Notes under the pieces: generated by a model | The model's input: only the letters and a program-made list of their open reading frames with translations | What the model was told of the DNA's origin: nothing | Database searches by the model: none | NCBI RefSeq assembly: GCF_000142905.1 | Contig: NW_013657610.1 | Location: 30,627-94,626, forward strand | Direction of reading: 5' to 3' | Origin: Thecamonas trahens ATCC 50062 | Taxonomy: Eukaryota > Protista > Apusomonadida | DNA length: 64,000 nucleotides | Position numbers and translations under genes: made by a program | Shown: positions 30,504-41,916 of the stretch, piece after piece | Position numbering within the stretch: position 1 is the stretch's first letter | Layout of the letters: the number at the start of each line of letters is the position of its first letter

Positions 30504-30736
30504 CACACACACACCGAATGCTCCACCATGATCTCCACCGCATCACCCTCAGCCACAAACACCATCAGCCGCATCACCATCAGCAGCATCTCCCGCCCTA
30601 CAGCAGAAAGTTTTGATCGCGACCGGCGAGCGGGCGGCGGGCGGCGGGTGGCGGGTGGTGTAGCCGGCGAGCGGGCGGTGGAGCCGGCGGTGATTCGGGC
30701 GACTCGGTGACTCGACGATTTGAGCGACAGCGACTT

Positions 30737-36448: not shown

Positions 36449-39400
36449 TCACGTAGAGCTGTCAGCAGTGTCGGCAGTGTCGGTGGTGTTGGCATTGTCG
36501 GCGGTGTCGATGGTCAAGGTGTACGGTGTCGTCGGCGGACCGATGAGAATCGGAGGTCGGCGAGGTGCAAATGCAAGCGCGAGCGGAGTCTTCGGCACTC
36601 GGAACACGAGCGGATACGTCTCACCAGCAAAGCAGAAATTCAGGTCTTCCACCGCGACTGCATCTCTTACTCGCTTCGGCCGCTTGATCTTACCGAGGTA
36701 GCGGAACACACCCGCGTCAAGCTGCCAAAGTCGCACATTGTCACTCCAGCTCGTTGTCGCTGTGGCGACCGTAAACGGTGTAAACTTAAGAAACCAGATT
36801 GCGCGCACAGACGCGCTGTGTCCCGACGAGGAGCCTGTCAGCACAGTCACAGGAGGATTGTAGCGCTTCGGGTCGCCTGGAGAGACATCTGGCGCATGCC
36901 ATACCCGTATGGTCCCATCCATCGCCCACGACACAAGTATTGGGAGCGTGTGGTCCGCGCTGGTAAGGTGCGCCACTGCGACCACACCACACACTTGGCC
37001 CGTGTGGCCGCGCAGCTTCTCACAGCTGCCATCGTCATGTATGACCACAATCGAATGGTCTGACAGCCAGGTCACGGCCAGCTGTGGTGACAACACCGCA
37101 GCGCCGATCACAGCTGCGCTGTTCAGCACGTCGACCGGTACGGCACCGCAAGTCTCCGCTACTTCAGAAGACGTTGACAGGAGCTGTAGCGGCTGACCGC
37201 GACCCGCCCACAACCACAGCTGGTCATGTTCTGTTGCCACCGCGAGTCGGGCGGCTTCGGCGTACACCACGCGCTCCTCGTCATCGTCACCCACACCGAT
37301 CTCGATCACCGTGCCGTTCTTGCGCCACACCAGGACACGGTCGTCATTGCTCCGAGTAGAAAACACTGCCTTGATCCCCTCCTTCACGTCTAGAGCGCCC
37401 ATCACACGGTAAAAGCTTCCGGACATGCGCCACACCTGGACACAGCTCTCGGTCCATGTGGCCAGAACAGGCGAGCTGTCAGAATTCTCGAGTTCGGTCG
37501 ACAGGACCACCAGCCCCGCCACAGCATGACCACCGGCAAGGATTCCACAGCACTCGCCCTCGTACCGCTCGCCGTTCCAGCGCCACATCCAAACCACAGG
37601 CACCTGTGCCCACTCGCCGGCGCGCGACCATGACAATAGCGCCGGGAGACCATCGGCACCAGCAGTCTCGATGACAATCACATCTTCCACGGCCATCGGA
37701 TGGCCACCCAGCACCGTGCTGTGGTAGAACGGTGGCTCATCCGTCGGCGTCCACACCCTCAATGTGCCGTCGGCAGACCACGACACAAAACTGTCGTTCC
37801 GCAGCAAGCTGATGCCGCGCACAGCCTCTGCGTGTCCATCGAGTACCGCCAGACGCTTGCCCGCCACAACGTCCAGTACATCAACGGTGGCACCGCAGCC
37901 CACAGCCACACGGCTGCCACTCAGCGCCGTACACACCGGGCCGGCGTTGGCCCCAGAAAAACGTACCGCTGCGCGCCACGATGTGAGCTTGGGTCCATGG
38001 CGTAGATGGGCACATATGTGAGATGAGACAGACTCGCACGCGCTGCCGCTTCCAGCGCAGCAAGTTCGGACGTCACACCTTTGTATGCCAACCGCCTGAC
38101 AATGGCCGCACCCAGCGTGCACTCGCCCCGCGCAATCATGTCCTGCGACAGTGCCAGTGCTCGCTCCAGCTCAGCAACGACACTCACCCGCTCAACACGC
38201 AGCTCAGCCACCGCACGGAGGTCTGCAAGCGCGCCGGCCACATCGCCGGCCACCCGCGCACTGAGCCAGTCCCATGACAGAACCACATCAACAGCAGTCT
38301 TGTGCGCTGCCGGAGTGTTGGCCGCCACAAGATGGTAAACACCGTGGACAAATGCCCACCTCTCGCGCTCGCTTGACTCGCCCGATTTGCACATGACGGC
38401 AACTGCTGCTGCGGGGAGGCTGACTCTGGAGGGCAGCCGCAGATGAGAGCAAGGTGCCGCGCGGCCAAGAGAGTAGGCTCGACATCAACTGCTTTGCGCA
38501 GGAACTCGCGATGGAGGTCGTGGAGTTCAACGCCAACGACCAAGCCTTCAGGATTGCGGATAGCAGAGAGCAGCGACGCAGCTTCCAGTGCATCCCACGC
38601 AACCTTGCGCACAGCCTCGGACATTTCCAGCGTTGGCTCAATAATGAGCATGTCAATCGTCGTGTCAGATGGAAAAAGGCCAAGCATGGCGTACACATTC
38701 CGCGCGTAGTCGTCAAGGCGCATCACGGCATGATACATAATGGCAAAGATGTCCTCATAGCGCGAGCCAGCAAACTTGTCCGAGGCGAGCGAGAGCATAG
38801 CATTAAAGTCGCGGTCAGCAGTGTCGAGCTTGTCAACGGTGTCGATCGAGCCACCCAGAACAGCCAATGCGATGGCGTGGTTGTGGCAGAGCTCGGCCAG
38901 TCGGCCAATCCTCTCGTCGTCGGGGCCAATACCGTCGAGTCCGACGTGGCGGGTAAGCACAAGTCGCGCGTCGGCTGGCGAGAGCATGCCGAGTGTCACC
39001 GTTGCAGTAGACGACACCATGTTGGCCGAATTGCGGGTTGTGACCAGGACGGCGTGCGGAGGACGGACAGCCTTCGTGAAAACCTCAGCTTGTCGCGCGG
39101 TCCACACATCATCGAGCACGAGAAGGACACGAGTTCCCGCCGCGGCAAGAACTATTAGTTGATCAGCAAGGCTGCGCTGGAGATCGTCCAGCTCGGCAAA
39201 CTGTGAGACTTTGTAACCGAGACCCTGCTCGAGAAGGTAGCCCAGCTTGCGCGTGAGAGCATCGCTCGAAGTGCGGTCCTCACCCAGCTCGAGCCAAAAT
39301 ACTCGAAACTCGGAGACGATGTCGGGCTGGGTGGCAATGTCGGCAGCCAGGAGTGACTTGCCGATGCCACCGAGACCTTTGAGACCCACGACCGTCACGC

Positions 39401-41428
39401 TCTCTTCCTTCAGCAACGCACAGACGGCAGCGGCACGCTTGGAGCGCAATGGCACGTATGCAGACGGGAGTGGCTTGGGCGGAAGGGTCGACGGCAGAAT
39501 GCGAACCTTTGAGAGCACCTTCAGCGAGCGGACCGCCAGGTCTTCTAACGACGTCTCGACAGAGATCTGACGCAAGTCATACAGTGCCAAGCCATGGTCA
39601 AGAAGCGCATAGGCCGTGATCACGTGATCGACCTTGTCGGTTGGAGTGAGATGTCTGTGGCGCCAGGTCCGGAACTGACGCTCTTGGTCTGGCACTTGGA
39701 AGAACGTGTACATGAGCTTGATGACAGAGTGGAGAGCAGACGTGGAGGCCTTAACTGCTATTTGCAGAGAAGCGTTGGATTGATCGCCTTGGAGCGCGGC
39801 ATGATCAGCCTCGGCAGCAGCGAGGAGGTCGTCGAGGTTGGCCAACTTGTGGGGTGCAGGGAATGATTTGAGCGTAGCAAGCGAAATGTTGCCATGGCCG
39901 GGAAACACCGGGAATACCTTGCAGTGGTTTGCCGGACAAAGTGCGGCCTTGGCCTCGGCCACAGCCCAGCGTGTAACGAGAAAGTACTCAGAGACGATGA
40001 CAACAACGACCCGCGACGCCTTGACAATGTCGGCGCAGTCATCTGGGTATGCACACCGCATGCCGTCAAGTGACTTGGTGTCCACAAAGACCTTGAGGGA
40101 TTGGTTCCGCTTGAGGATGCGATCGCGGAGGTCGATCGCAAGGCCCTTGTCGTACGAGCCATGACAGATGAAGAGGTCATAGGTCTTTGGGGGCACAGCG
40201 GGTGAGGATGACGGCCCGGCTCTGTCATCAGAGTCGGGCGAGAACTCGCTCAGAGTTGACGGGAGAGGCGTTGTAAGTGACGAAGTGGCGGAGTCAATTG
40301 GTGCCGAGAGAAGATCGGGGCGAGCGAGACGAAGAAAAGTAAAAACGTCGGGCGAGAGGTTGGGCGTATCGCGCGCGAGGGCATAGGTGACGTCGTCGGG
40401 GATGACGCGGTAAGAGACAATGAGCTGGACAAACTCGACGTCGTTCAGCAGAATTGCGTGCTGAAGCGCCGACTGATAGACGGAAATACCGGCTTTGGAC
40501 AACAGCCATCGCACAGTCTTGGCGTGGCGGCTGCGGATAGCAACATGCAACGGTGTCAATCCGTCCTTGTCGGCCACATTGACATCGGCTCCGCCTTCGA
40601 TCACCAGCCACTTGACCACCTCCCAGTTCTTGTCCTGAGCAGCAGCATTCAGCGGTGTCCCTCCGTCCTTGTCGGCCACATTGACATCGGCTCCCCCCTC
40701 GGTCACCAGCCACTTGACCACCTCCATGTGGCCGTTCCAAGCAGCAGCATGCAGCGGTGTCCCTCCGTACTTGTCGGCCACATTGACATCGACTCCGCCC
40801 TCGGTCACCAGCCACTTGACCATCTCCCAGTTCTTGTCCTGAGCAGCAGCATTCAGCGGTGTCATTCCGTTCTTGTCGGCCACATTGACATCGGCTCTGC
40901 CCTCGGTCACCAGCCACTTGACCATCTCCCAGCTCTTGTTCTGAGCAGCAGCATACAGCGGTGTCCTTCGGTACTTGTCGGCCACATTGACATCGACTCC
41001 GCCCTCGGTCACCAGCCACTTGACCACCTCCCAGCTCTTCTTCCGAGCAGCAACATACAGCAGTGTCCCTCCGTCCTTGTTGGCCACATTGACATCGGCT
41101 CTGCCCTCGGTCACCAGCCACTTGACCACCTCCATGTGGCCGTCCTGAGCAGCAACATACAGCGGTGTCCCTCCGTCCTTGTCGGCCACATTGACATCGG
41201 CTCCGCCCTCGGCCACCAGCCACTTGACCATCTCCCAGTGCCGTCCTGAGCAGCAACATACAGCGGTGTCCACCCGTCCTTGTCGGCCACATTGACATCG
41301 GCTCCGCACTCGGTCACCAGCCTCTTCACCTCCTCCTGGTCACCTCTCCTCACAGCCGAGCACACCTCCAACACCAGGTCACCCCCAGCAGTCCTCCACA
41401 CCATCCCGTCCCCTGCACCTTCAGCCAT
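36449..41428 (-). CDS. Ankyrin-TIR-NB-ARC(STAND)-helical-WD40 protein, ~1,660 aa, with three apparent single-base frameshifts
   Basis: Four ORFs join by adding one base at ~41240 (GGC[C]AC, as in sister repeats), 38413-38416 and 37951-37961. TIR: YDLFICH..KVFVD..SRVVVVIVSEYFLVTRWAVAE. NB-ARC: GLGGIGKS, LLVLDDVW, VLVTTRN, LHDL. WD40: LDGHAEAV..SWSADGTLRVW, LRGHTGQV..SWAMDGTIRVW, SWSDNVRLW. Confidence 0.88.
40500..41330 (-). repeat. Array of ~8 near-identical 102-bp (34-aa) ankyrin repeats
   Basis: cacttgacc recurs at 40609, 40711, 40813, 40915, 41017, 41119 and 41221. Confidence 0.97.
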
Positions 41429-41916
41429 ATGCCTCCCACACCCACAGCACACAACACACGAGAGAGGTGTACCCCCGTACCCCCTCTTCCCCTTCCCCTC
41501 CTCCCTCTGCCGGCTTCCTTGCCGTCACAGCGACACCGAATGCGTTTTTCGCCAGAGAATCCCCAAAAAATACATATCGCAAACATGCGACAGTGACTCT
41601 GTTCTGCCCGGCTGGAGCCATTACCAGCTACTGACCTGCGCAGTCGGTCTTGCTGGTAGTCGCTGTCATCAGAGGAGGTACATGAATGAGCGATCATGTC
41701 GGTCTACGTGGGTTGGGGAGTGTGTGTGTGCGAGGGGGTGGGGGTGGGTAGCTCGTCGGCGAGGGCGTTGTCCACCGCGTCGTTTACCGCGTTATGCGCT
41801 ATGTGGCGATGTTGCTCGTCCCCCTCCCTCCCCAAGCACTCCAACGTTGTCGAGATCATGACCACAATCCTCCTTCTTCCCTGTGGCTGCTGTTCACTGT
41901 TCAATCCACCTCGTCT

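Follow-up and report, generated by a model that had tools for sequence, protein, structure and literature searches.

Near-identical repeats with a hypervariable surface are a mark of fast-evolving fungal non-self receptors and are rare elsewhere. Does a gene of the apusomonad Thecamonas trahens, a unicellular member of the sister lineage of Opisthokonta, carry this mark, and by what process could it have arisen? The gene lies on the minus strand of a 64,000-nucleotide stretch of strain ATCC 50062 (positions 30,627 to 94,626 of contig NW_013657610.1, RefSeq assembly GCF_000142905.1), which we call the window and whose numbering is used throughout, and its 5′ part encodes an array of ankyrin repeats. 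A preliminary description made from the letters alone saw in this array a rapidly evolving sensor or decoy that diversifies by repeat shuffling. Here we describe near-identical repeat units, amino acid differences clustered in one half of the unit and a mosaic of variant patches. We lean towards concerted evolution combined with diversifying selection on the ankyrin array of an NOD-like receptor (NLR)-like STAND gene that has probably since been inactivated.

The array comprises eight units of 102 bp (34 residues) on the minus strand (40464–41278). Units were delimited by anchoring on the conserved hairpin DNA and start at 41278, 41177, 41075, 40973, 40871, 40769, 40667 and 40565. Between 40539 and 41336, Tandem Repeats Finder detected 7.8 copies of a 102-bp period, free of indels and matching at 88%. 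Units 1–7 are on average 89% identical in DNA (range 85–94%) and 75% identical in protein (range 68–85%), and every unit differs from every other at 6 or more of 102 nucleotides, which makes misassembly unlikely; the repeats are confirmed as real, not artefactual. The domain opens with the first ATG (41426–41428) and an N-terminal capping ankyrin half-repeat (41279–41428, translated in the upstream frame, open reading frame (ORF) 41111–41452) that terminates in hairpin DNA shared with the internal units. It is followed by unit 1 (41178–41278), which is 101 bp long and carries a frameshift (FS1), as read from the anchor spacing of 101 instead of 102, the codon table and the change of frame. Then come the six near-identical 102-bp units 2–7 (40566–41177), variable in the hairpin, helix 1 and turn, and unit 8 (40464–40565), which is of the DGL..H..SRHAKT type and diverged from units 1–7 (model helices 209–215 and 219–226). 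C-terminal capping helices (40368–40463; model helices 231–243, 247–256 and 261–270) close the domain.

Pfam assigns the array to Ank_2 (293.9 bits, cut-off 27.3) and Ank (210.4 bits, cut-off 21.1) in 7 stretches, with E values down to 3.6e-89 for the Ank families, and its sequence matches in the PDB include ankyrin-1/2 and designed ankyrin repeat proteins (DARPins). The unit is one residue longer than the canonical ankyrin repeat of 33 residues, and alignment to ankyrin-1/2 places the surplus residue in the loop between helix 2 and the next hairpin. An AlphaFold2 model of the array (predicted local distance difference test score, pLDDT, 83.8; predicted template modelling score, pTM, 0.78) contains two helices per 34 residues, seven times over, plus a cap; within the modelled unit, helix 1 spans positions 5–11 and helix 2 spans positions 15–23.

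Units 1–7 vary at 27 nucleotide sites (about 30 inferred changes), and three of these, in codons 2, 24 and 25, are purely synonymous. The variation is concentrated in the first half of the unit: the first 51 nucleotides hold 20 of the 27 variable sites (binomial p=0.0096), and 12 of 17 codons vary there as against 4 of 17 in the second half (Fisher p=0.015). Counting nonsynonymous (pN) and synonymous (pS) differences per site by the Nei–Gojobori method over units 1–7 gave a pN/pS of 3.1 overall, 5.4 in codons 1–17 and 1.0 in codons 18–34. The synonymous component is small (pS about 0.045) and near-equal in the two halves (0.042 and 0.047), whereas pN, at 0.23 in codons 1–17, differs five-fold between them. 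Unit pairs 2–4 and 3–5 combine a synonymous distance of 0–0.014 with a nonsynonymous distance of 0.155–0.20. Hot positions are 1 and 3 at the hairpin tip, 7, 8, 11 and 12 in helix 1, and 13–15 in the turn and at the start of helix 2; positions 1, 3, 7, 11 and 12 each take three to four states through single-nucleotide nonsynonymous steps. None of the reading-frame segments contains a stop codon. For comparison we used the nearest arrays in the genome, which belong to genes of the order Ank–TKL kinase–TIR at both ends of contig C10 (about 70% nucleotide and 48% protein identity, 34-residue period, about 20 units). Divergence in those arrays extends over the whole unit, positions 28–34 included, with 66–72% nucleotide identity between units. 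Positions 28–34, free surface positions there, are frozen in the array under study; the entropies of the two kinds of array correlate with a rho of about 0.4.

The variant patches are combined discordantly. In the hairpin, units 2, 3 and 7 group together; in helix 1 the groups are 1 with 2 and 5 with 7, in the turn 2 with 6, 3 with 4 and 5 with 7, and in the second half 3 with 5. Distance matrices for the hairpin, helix 1, the turn and the helix 2/loop segment are uncorrelated (r≤0), 43 of the 78 informative pairs of sites violate the four-gamete condition, and the minimum number of recombination events (Rmin) is 4 within 102 bp. The discordant mosaic is real. One of its elements is a cassette in the turn, codons 13–15, which occurs in two coupled forms, G-H-M and K-S/N-W. 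These differ at 6–7 of 9 nucleotides in a setting of nearly invariant scaffold DNA, which points to old cassette states spread among young, homogenized flanks by short-tract exchange; point mutation on a young array would not easily yield them. The preliminary description fares well on all of this. Its near-identical 102-bp scaffold is borne out by the tandem-repeat analysis and the mean DNA identity of 89%, and every variant that it named was found (DGW/DGG/YRR/NGM/YGG/DGL; Y/N/H; QDGH/RKKS/QNKS/QDKN/WNGH). The placing of variation at the hairpin and first helix agrees with the first-half clustering and the contrast in pN/pS, and the recurrence of variants in mosaic combinations agrees with the four-gamete failures and the uncorrelated segments. 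The changes are neither evenly spread nor mainly synonymous.

The gene that carries the array has the Pfam domain order Ank–TIR–NB-ARC–WD40 and, judged from its sequence, is predicted to encode a lineage-specific, NLR-like STAND protein of this architecture. The TIR domain (39897–40181, minus strand) matches TIR_2 at 31.1 bits (cut-off 28) and TIR at 22.8 bits (cut-off 21.3). Its W-x-x-x-E glutamate aligns, in a weak match (E=0.01), to the W-C-L-x-E of the Arabidopsis TIR structure 3JRN; the equivalent glutamate is catalytic in plant TIRs. The NB-ARC NTPase domain (38736–39419, minus strand; Pfam E=7.9e-15), which has 18 paralogous loci in the genome, is in the reading frame of the array, and a P-loop of the form GxxGxGKS (GLGGIGKS) and a Walker B motif (LVLDDVW) lie in the ORF 38184–41309. 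The WD40 region (36449–37963, minus strand; Pfam WD40 35.9 bits) occupies the next ORF up to the stop codon. It had been called degenerate, rightly when set against paralogs: it is about 30% identical to the WD units of the T. trahens paralog P0001.

The reading frame of this gene changes at three places. At FS1, in unit 1, codon 14 retains two bases (41238–41239), and the gap falls at the exact junction of a codon 13 of the G-H type and a codon 15 of the W type, so that the unit is a hybrid of the two cassette types. FS2 (approximately 38385–38406) and FS3 (approximately 37965–37975, at or beside a run of five T) mark points beyond which the match to paralogs carries on, still colinear, in a different frame. 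Introns were considered as the cause and rejected: four paralog proteins align colinearly with no residues skipped, and the frame changes are therefore indels. Other genes of the window have intact ORFs of 1,051–2,096 residues. The copy in this strain is most likely a recently inactivated pseudogene and, given the three frameshifts, is probably not a working sensor.

We suggest, with somewhat more confidence than doubt, that the array records concerted evolution acting together with diversifying selection in an NLR-like STAND gene that is now inactive. The 34-residue units have been amplified, and exchange within the array, by unequal crossing-over or short-tract gene conversion, has kept their DNA homogeneous. 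Amino acid differences have been kept or favoured in helix 1, at the tip of the hairpin and in the turn between the helices, and variant patches have been redistributed among units to give the mosaic. The concave ankyrin surface could thereby have been tuned to a changing ligand, and the array may have been a second sensor, an integrated decoy or a lid that a ligand lifts off the neighbouring TIR domain. Ligand binding would then have licensed NB-ARC-driven oligomerization and TIR NADase signalling. With FS1–FS3, this copy is most likely a family member inactivated not long ago, the family being one of birth and death whose loci lie mostly near contig ends. The pattern is most likely a record of past selection and exchange, not a receptor working today.

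Several findings weigh against this explanation, and the first group concerns the binding surface. The preliminary description equated the variable residues with the ligand-contact positions randomized in DARPins. The original DARPin library, that of Binz et al. in 2003, reportedly randomized positions 2, 3, 5, 13, 14 and 33. In library numbering, the variable residues of the array include 3, 5, 10, 13 and 14, and to that extent the equation is partly supported. It is not supported at positions 2 and 33, which are invariant in the array and variable in the paralogous C10 arrays, nor by the framework positions 9 (the histidine of TPLH) and 15–17 (the turn), which also vary. The largest differences, those between G-H-M and K-S/N-W, sit between the two helices and where helix 2 begins, at library positions 15–17, outside the classic contact site; in the modelled fold they look less like contact residues than like two coupled scaffold states or alternative forms of the turn. 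The array and the designed ankyrin library scaffold (DxxGxTPLHxAAx..., ANK-N5C, PMC4308713) are alike in an identical scaffold and in variation at the beta-turn and helix 1, whereas positions 9 and 15–17 are kept fixed in DARPin libraries and the Thecamonas array is natural, with a unit of 34 residues.

A second group concerns the strength and scope of the signal. The synonymous deficit (3 of about 30 changes) is marginal when taken alone (binomial p=0.06), and the sample consists of seven units from one genome with recombination present, under which codon-based tests are unreliable. Highly conserved fungal repeats have been defined by at least 85% amino acid identity between repeats over at least 100 residues (Dyrka et al., PMC4986451); the array averages 75%. 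The preliminary description had suggested looking for the same unit on other STAND or TIR genes, and a search of the whole assembly with DNA and protein found no second locus, with nothing above 71% nucleotide or 54% protein identity. Of diversification by repeat shuffling there remains the part that fits exchange within the array; exchange between loci is unsupported, and shuffling, if any, took place within the gene, as no other locus has this unit. Finally, three frameshifts in about 5 kb interrupt what should be one frame and make present function doubtful, and with it the rapidly evolving sensor or decoy of the preliminary description. Alternatively, the frameshifts may stem from unreliable base calling at this locus.

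The main rival is biased homogenization, in which diversifying selection plays no part: gene conversion, whose initiation depends on high identity, would have homogenized the scaffold of two or three diverged unit types, and diverged patches would have been left behind or moved passively as leftover dimorphism. We regard it as unlikely, although it explains the turn well, where codons 13–15 form only two or three coupled states 6–7 nucleotides apart and lie in the turn and helix 2 start, away from any classic contact site. It also accommodates the two-unit periodicity of the second half (units 2 and 4 share R26, units 3 and 5 share V27), which suggests block duplication, and the older arrays of the 34-residue type on C10, which have diverged throughout to 66–72% nucleotide identity. 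What it does not predict is the distribution of synonymous change. Old unconverted patches should retain synonymous differences, whereas pS is equal in the two halves and pN five-fold apart; and at positions 1, 3, 7, 11 and 12 the three to four states are reached by single-nucleotide nonsynonymous steps.

Less probable still is neutral decay or relaxed constraint, either in a recently expanded array of a dead gene or in an ankyrin domain that has a structural, localization or regulatory role and free surface residues. Changes would then build up wherever the fold permits, with no selection by a ligand and with the WD40 repeats as the sensor of the family. The frameshifts amid intact neighbouring genes fit such a history. 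So does the finding, described below, that near-identical, loop-variable repeats are in paralogs a property of WD40, and ankyrin repeats in general vary at their non-consensus positions, as the rho of about 0.4 with the C10 arrays reflects. Relaxation would, however, give about three nonsynonymous changes per synonymous one, evenly spread, where we observed about nine to one, and one half of the unit holds 20 of the 27 sites. Single codons have taken several changes, no stop codon has arisen in the reading-frame segments, and the freezing of positions 28–34, free in the C10 arrays, is not something that relaxation alone would predict. An assembly or sequencing artefact, in which collapsed or chimeric reads made the array or its single-base gap, is very improbable: the gap at the junction of two cassette types is what a chimeric consensus might give, FS3 lies at a T5 run and paralogous loci in the assembly have masked or gapped stretches, but the units of this array of only about 0.8 kb all differ, their type is unique in the genome and so leaves no paralog to collapse into it, the period is exact with no indels besides the one gap, and an artefact could account for the frameshifts but not for the substitution pattern.

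Returning to concerted evolution with diversifying selection, we considered whether the gene has relatives that share its regime. The assembly contains about 23 TIR and 18 NB-ARC loci related to it, mostly within about 10 kb of contig ends. Such ends are those of C10, C17, C22, C26, C39, C49, C57, C59, C67, C71, C79, C91, C97, C101 and C125. C10 starts with a telomere of 75 copies of the hexamer CTAACC (L014:1-453). The contig of the gene under study is 114 kb long; the gene sits about 42 kb away from its end, where two further paralogs are found. About half of the paralog loci are split ORFs, and several TIR/NB-ARC paralogs have a common conserved upstream block. The location at contig ends, the telomere, the upstream block and the split ORFs together suggest a subtelomeric birth-and-death family.

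In these paralogs it is the WD40-type repeats, of 57 residues (171 bp), that are near-identical (86–91% identity). The array at C70:110998-112158 (L059:6983-8143) repeats every 171 bp, without indels and with 91% matches over 6.8 copies, and P0001 has five regular WD40 units with 86% protein identity. Only the loops GHT-xx-V-x-G and SWS-x-D-x-T vary, and blocks of two units have been duplicated. The WD40 repeats of paralogs are near-identical and vary at HET-E-like positions, so the diversification regime appears to characterize the family. This family-level pattern near contig ends in an apusomonad is probably a more valuable lead than the ankyrin array. The locus L059:2726-8530 (minus strand) holds a 1,934-residue frame with near-identical WD40 repeats, an NB-ARC domain, a second TIR domain and a P-loop of the nSTAND3 type, which may be a read-through of two genes or else a tandem STAND fusion of an unusual kind.

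Relatives of the individual domains are found in other settings. The best relative of the TIR–NB-ARC part is P0001 (45% identity). Outside Thecamonas, its nearest relatives are bacterial TIR/NB-ARC/WD40 proteins (Acidobacteriota, Longimicrobiaceae and others; about 27–32% identity), and the matches returned by the protein search include no eukaryotic orthologue of this part. The TIR domain alone is closest to one on C26 (79% identity; L057:6259-8982, minus strand), whose gene is a chimera: the TIR domain is fused to an N-terminus rich in lysine, to what is left of a P-loop region and to a Ulp1 (Peptidase_C48) domain. This paralog was considered as a source of a comparison array and rejected, as it has no ankyrin repeats; that its TIR domain sits on a different N-terminus and with Ulp1 shows free domain shuffling within the family. 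The Ank–(TKL kinase)–TIR genes at the ends of C10 (L014:3976-8190, minus strand, and L007:1179-3208, plus strand) and at 66–70 kb of C1 resemble the gene under study in the 34-residue unit, the W-L-V motif of helix 2 and an array upstream of a homologous TIR domain (59% identity). Unlike it, they are without NB-ARC or WD40 and have about 20 thoroughly diverged units. The left C10 array contains a 408-bp (four-unit) super-repeat, and some of its units are 97–99% identical. The N-terminal position of the ankyrin array, which had been thought unusual, is thus not unique in the genome, being found in Ank–kinase–TIR and Ank–TIR genes on C10 and C1. Public proteins yielded no orthologues or alleles of the array, its best ankyrin matches (about 50%) being generic ankyrin proteins.

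What might such a family do? A tentative and rather doubtful proposal is that T. trahens runs receptor diversification of the fungal type, with a TIR–NB-ARC birth-and-death family situated mostly near contig ends whose specificities come from shuffling near-identical repeat cassettes; most members would use WD40 repeats, and this gene an N-terminal ankyrin second sensor or decoy. If this were true, concerted evolution with diversifying selection on NLR repeats would be far older than fungi or would have been reinvented repeatedly, and repeat sensors could flank the effector on either side. The signature in an apusomonad, seen in the ankyrin array and more clearly in the WD40 paralogs, widens the phylogenetic range of the mechanism and suggests NLR-like immunity or allorecognition in free-living heterotrophic protists. 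The 28.7-Mb genome would offer a compact system for studying how repeat shuffling makes specificities. This copy appears to be broken, and its worth lies not in acting as a receptor but in recording the process and in leading to the family. Our search found no paper linking Thecamonas with NLRs and WD40 repeats, its coverage being limited and no proof of novelty.

Further known systems place the gene in context, beside the designed libraries discussed above. Plant TIR–NB-ARC–LRR (leucine-rich repeat) proteins and bacterial TIR–NB-ARC–WD40 proteins run, as this gene does, from a TIR effector through an NB-ARC switch to C-terminal repeats. The extra domain at a terminus can be likened, from sequence, to the integrated decoys of plant NLRs; unlike the plant proteins, the Thecamonas gene has WD40 in place of LRR, and the domain added at its N-terminus consists of repeats that themselves diversify.

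The fungal NLRs offer another comparison. The ANK, TPR and WD repeats of fungal NLRs can be highly conserved internally, which has been ascribed to concerted evolution with diversifying selection (Dyrka et al. 2014, PMC4986451). Highly conserved repeats make up 0.4–1.2% of ANK, TPR and WD proteins overall, and polymorphism in repeat number has been shown for the fungal NLR repeats (PMC4986451). Podospora HET-E/D/R, the NWD family and ANK loci such as Pa_3_8560 share with the gene under study repeats of near-identical DNA within a STAND protein built around a NOD (NB-ARC/NACHT). The fungal NLR ANK repeats likewise differ at a few hairpin and inner-helix positions in a mosaic that implies exchange within the array, and the fungal family likewise has many architectures and broken copies. 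The likeness to HET-E and HNWD drawn in the preliminary description therefore holds for the low pS, the concentrated nonsynonymous excess and the mosaic, and fails for the protein identity of 75% and the N-terminal placement. In contrast to the fungal genes, the host is an apusomonad, the array stands N-terminal to a TIR domain instead of C-terminal to the NOD, its unit has 34 residues, exchange between loci is not detectable and the gene is frameshifted. The WD40 paralogs of Thecamonas fit the HET-E/NWD pattern of Podospora more closely than the ankyrin array does.

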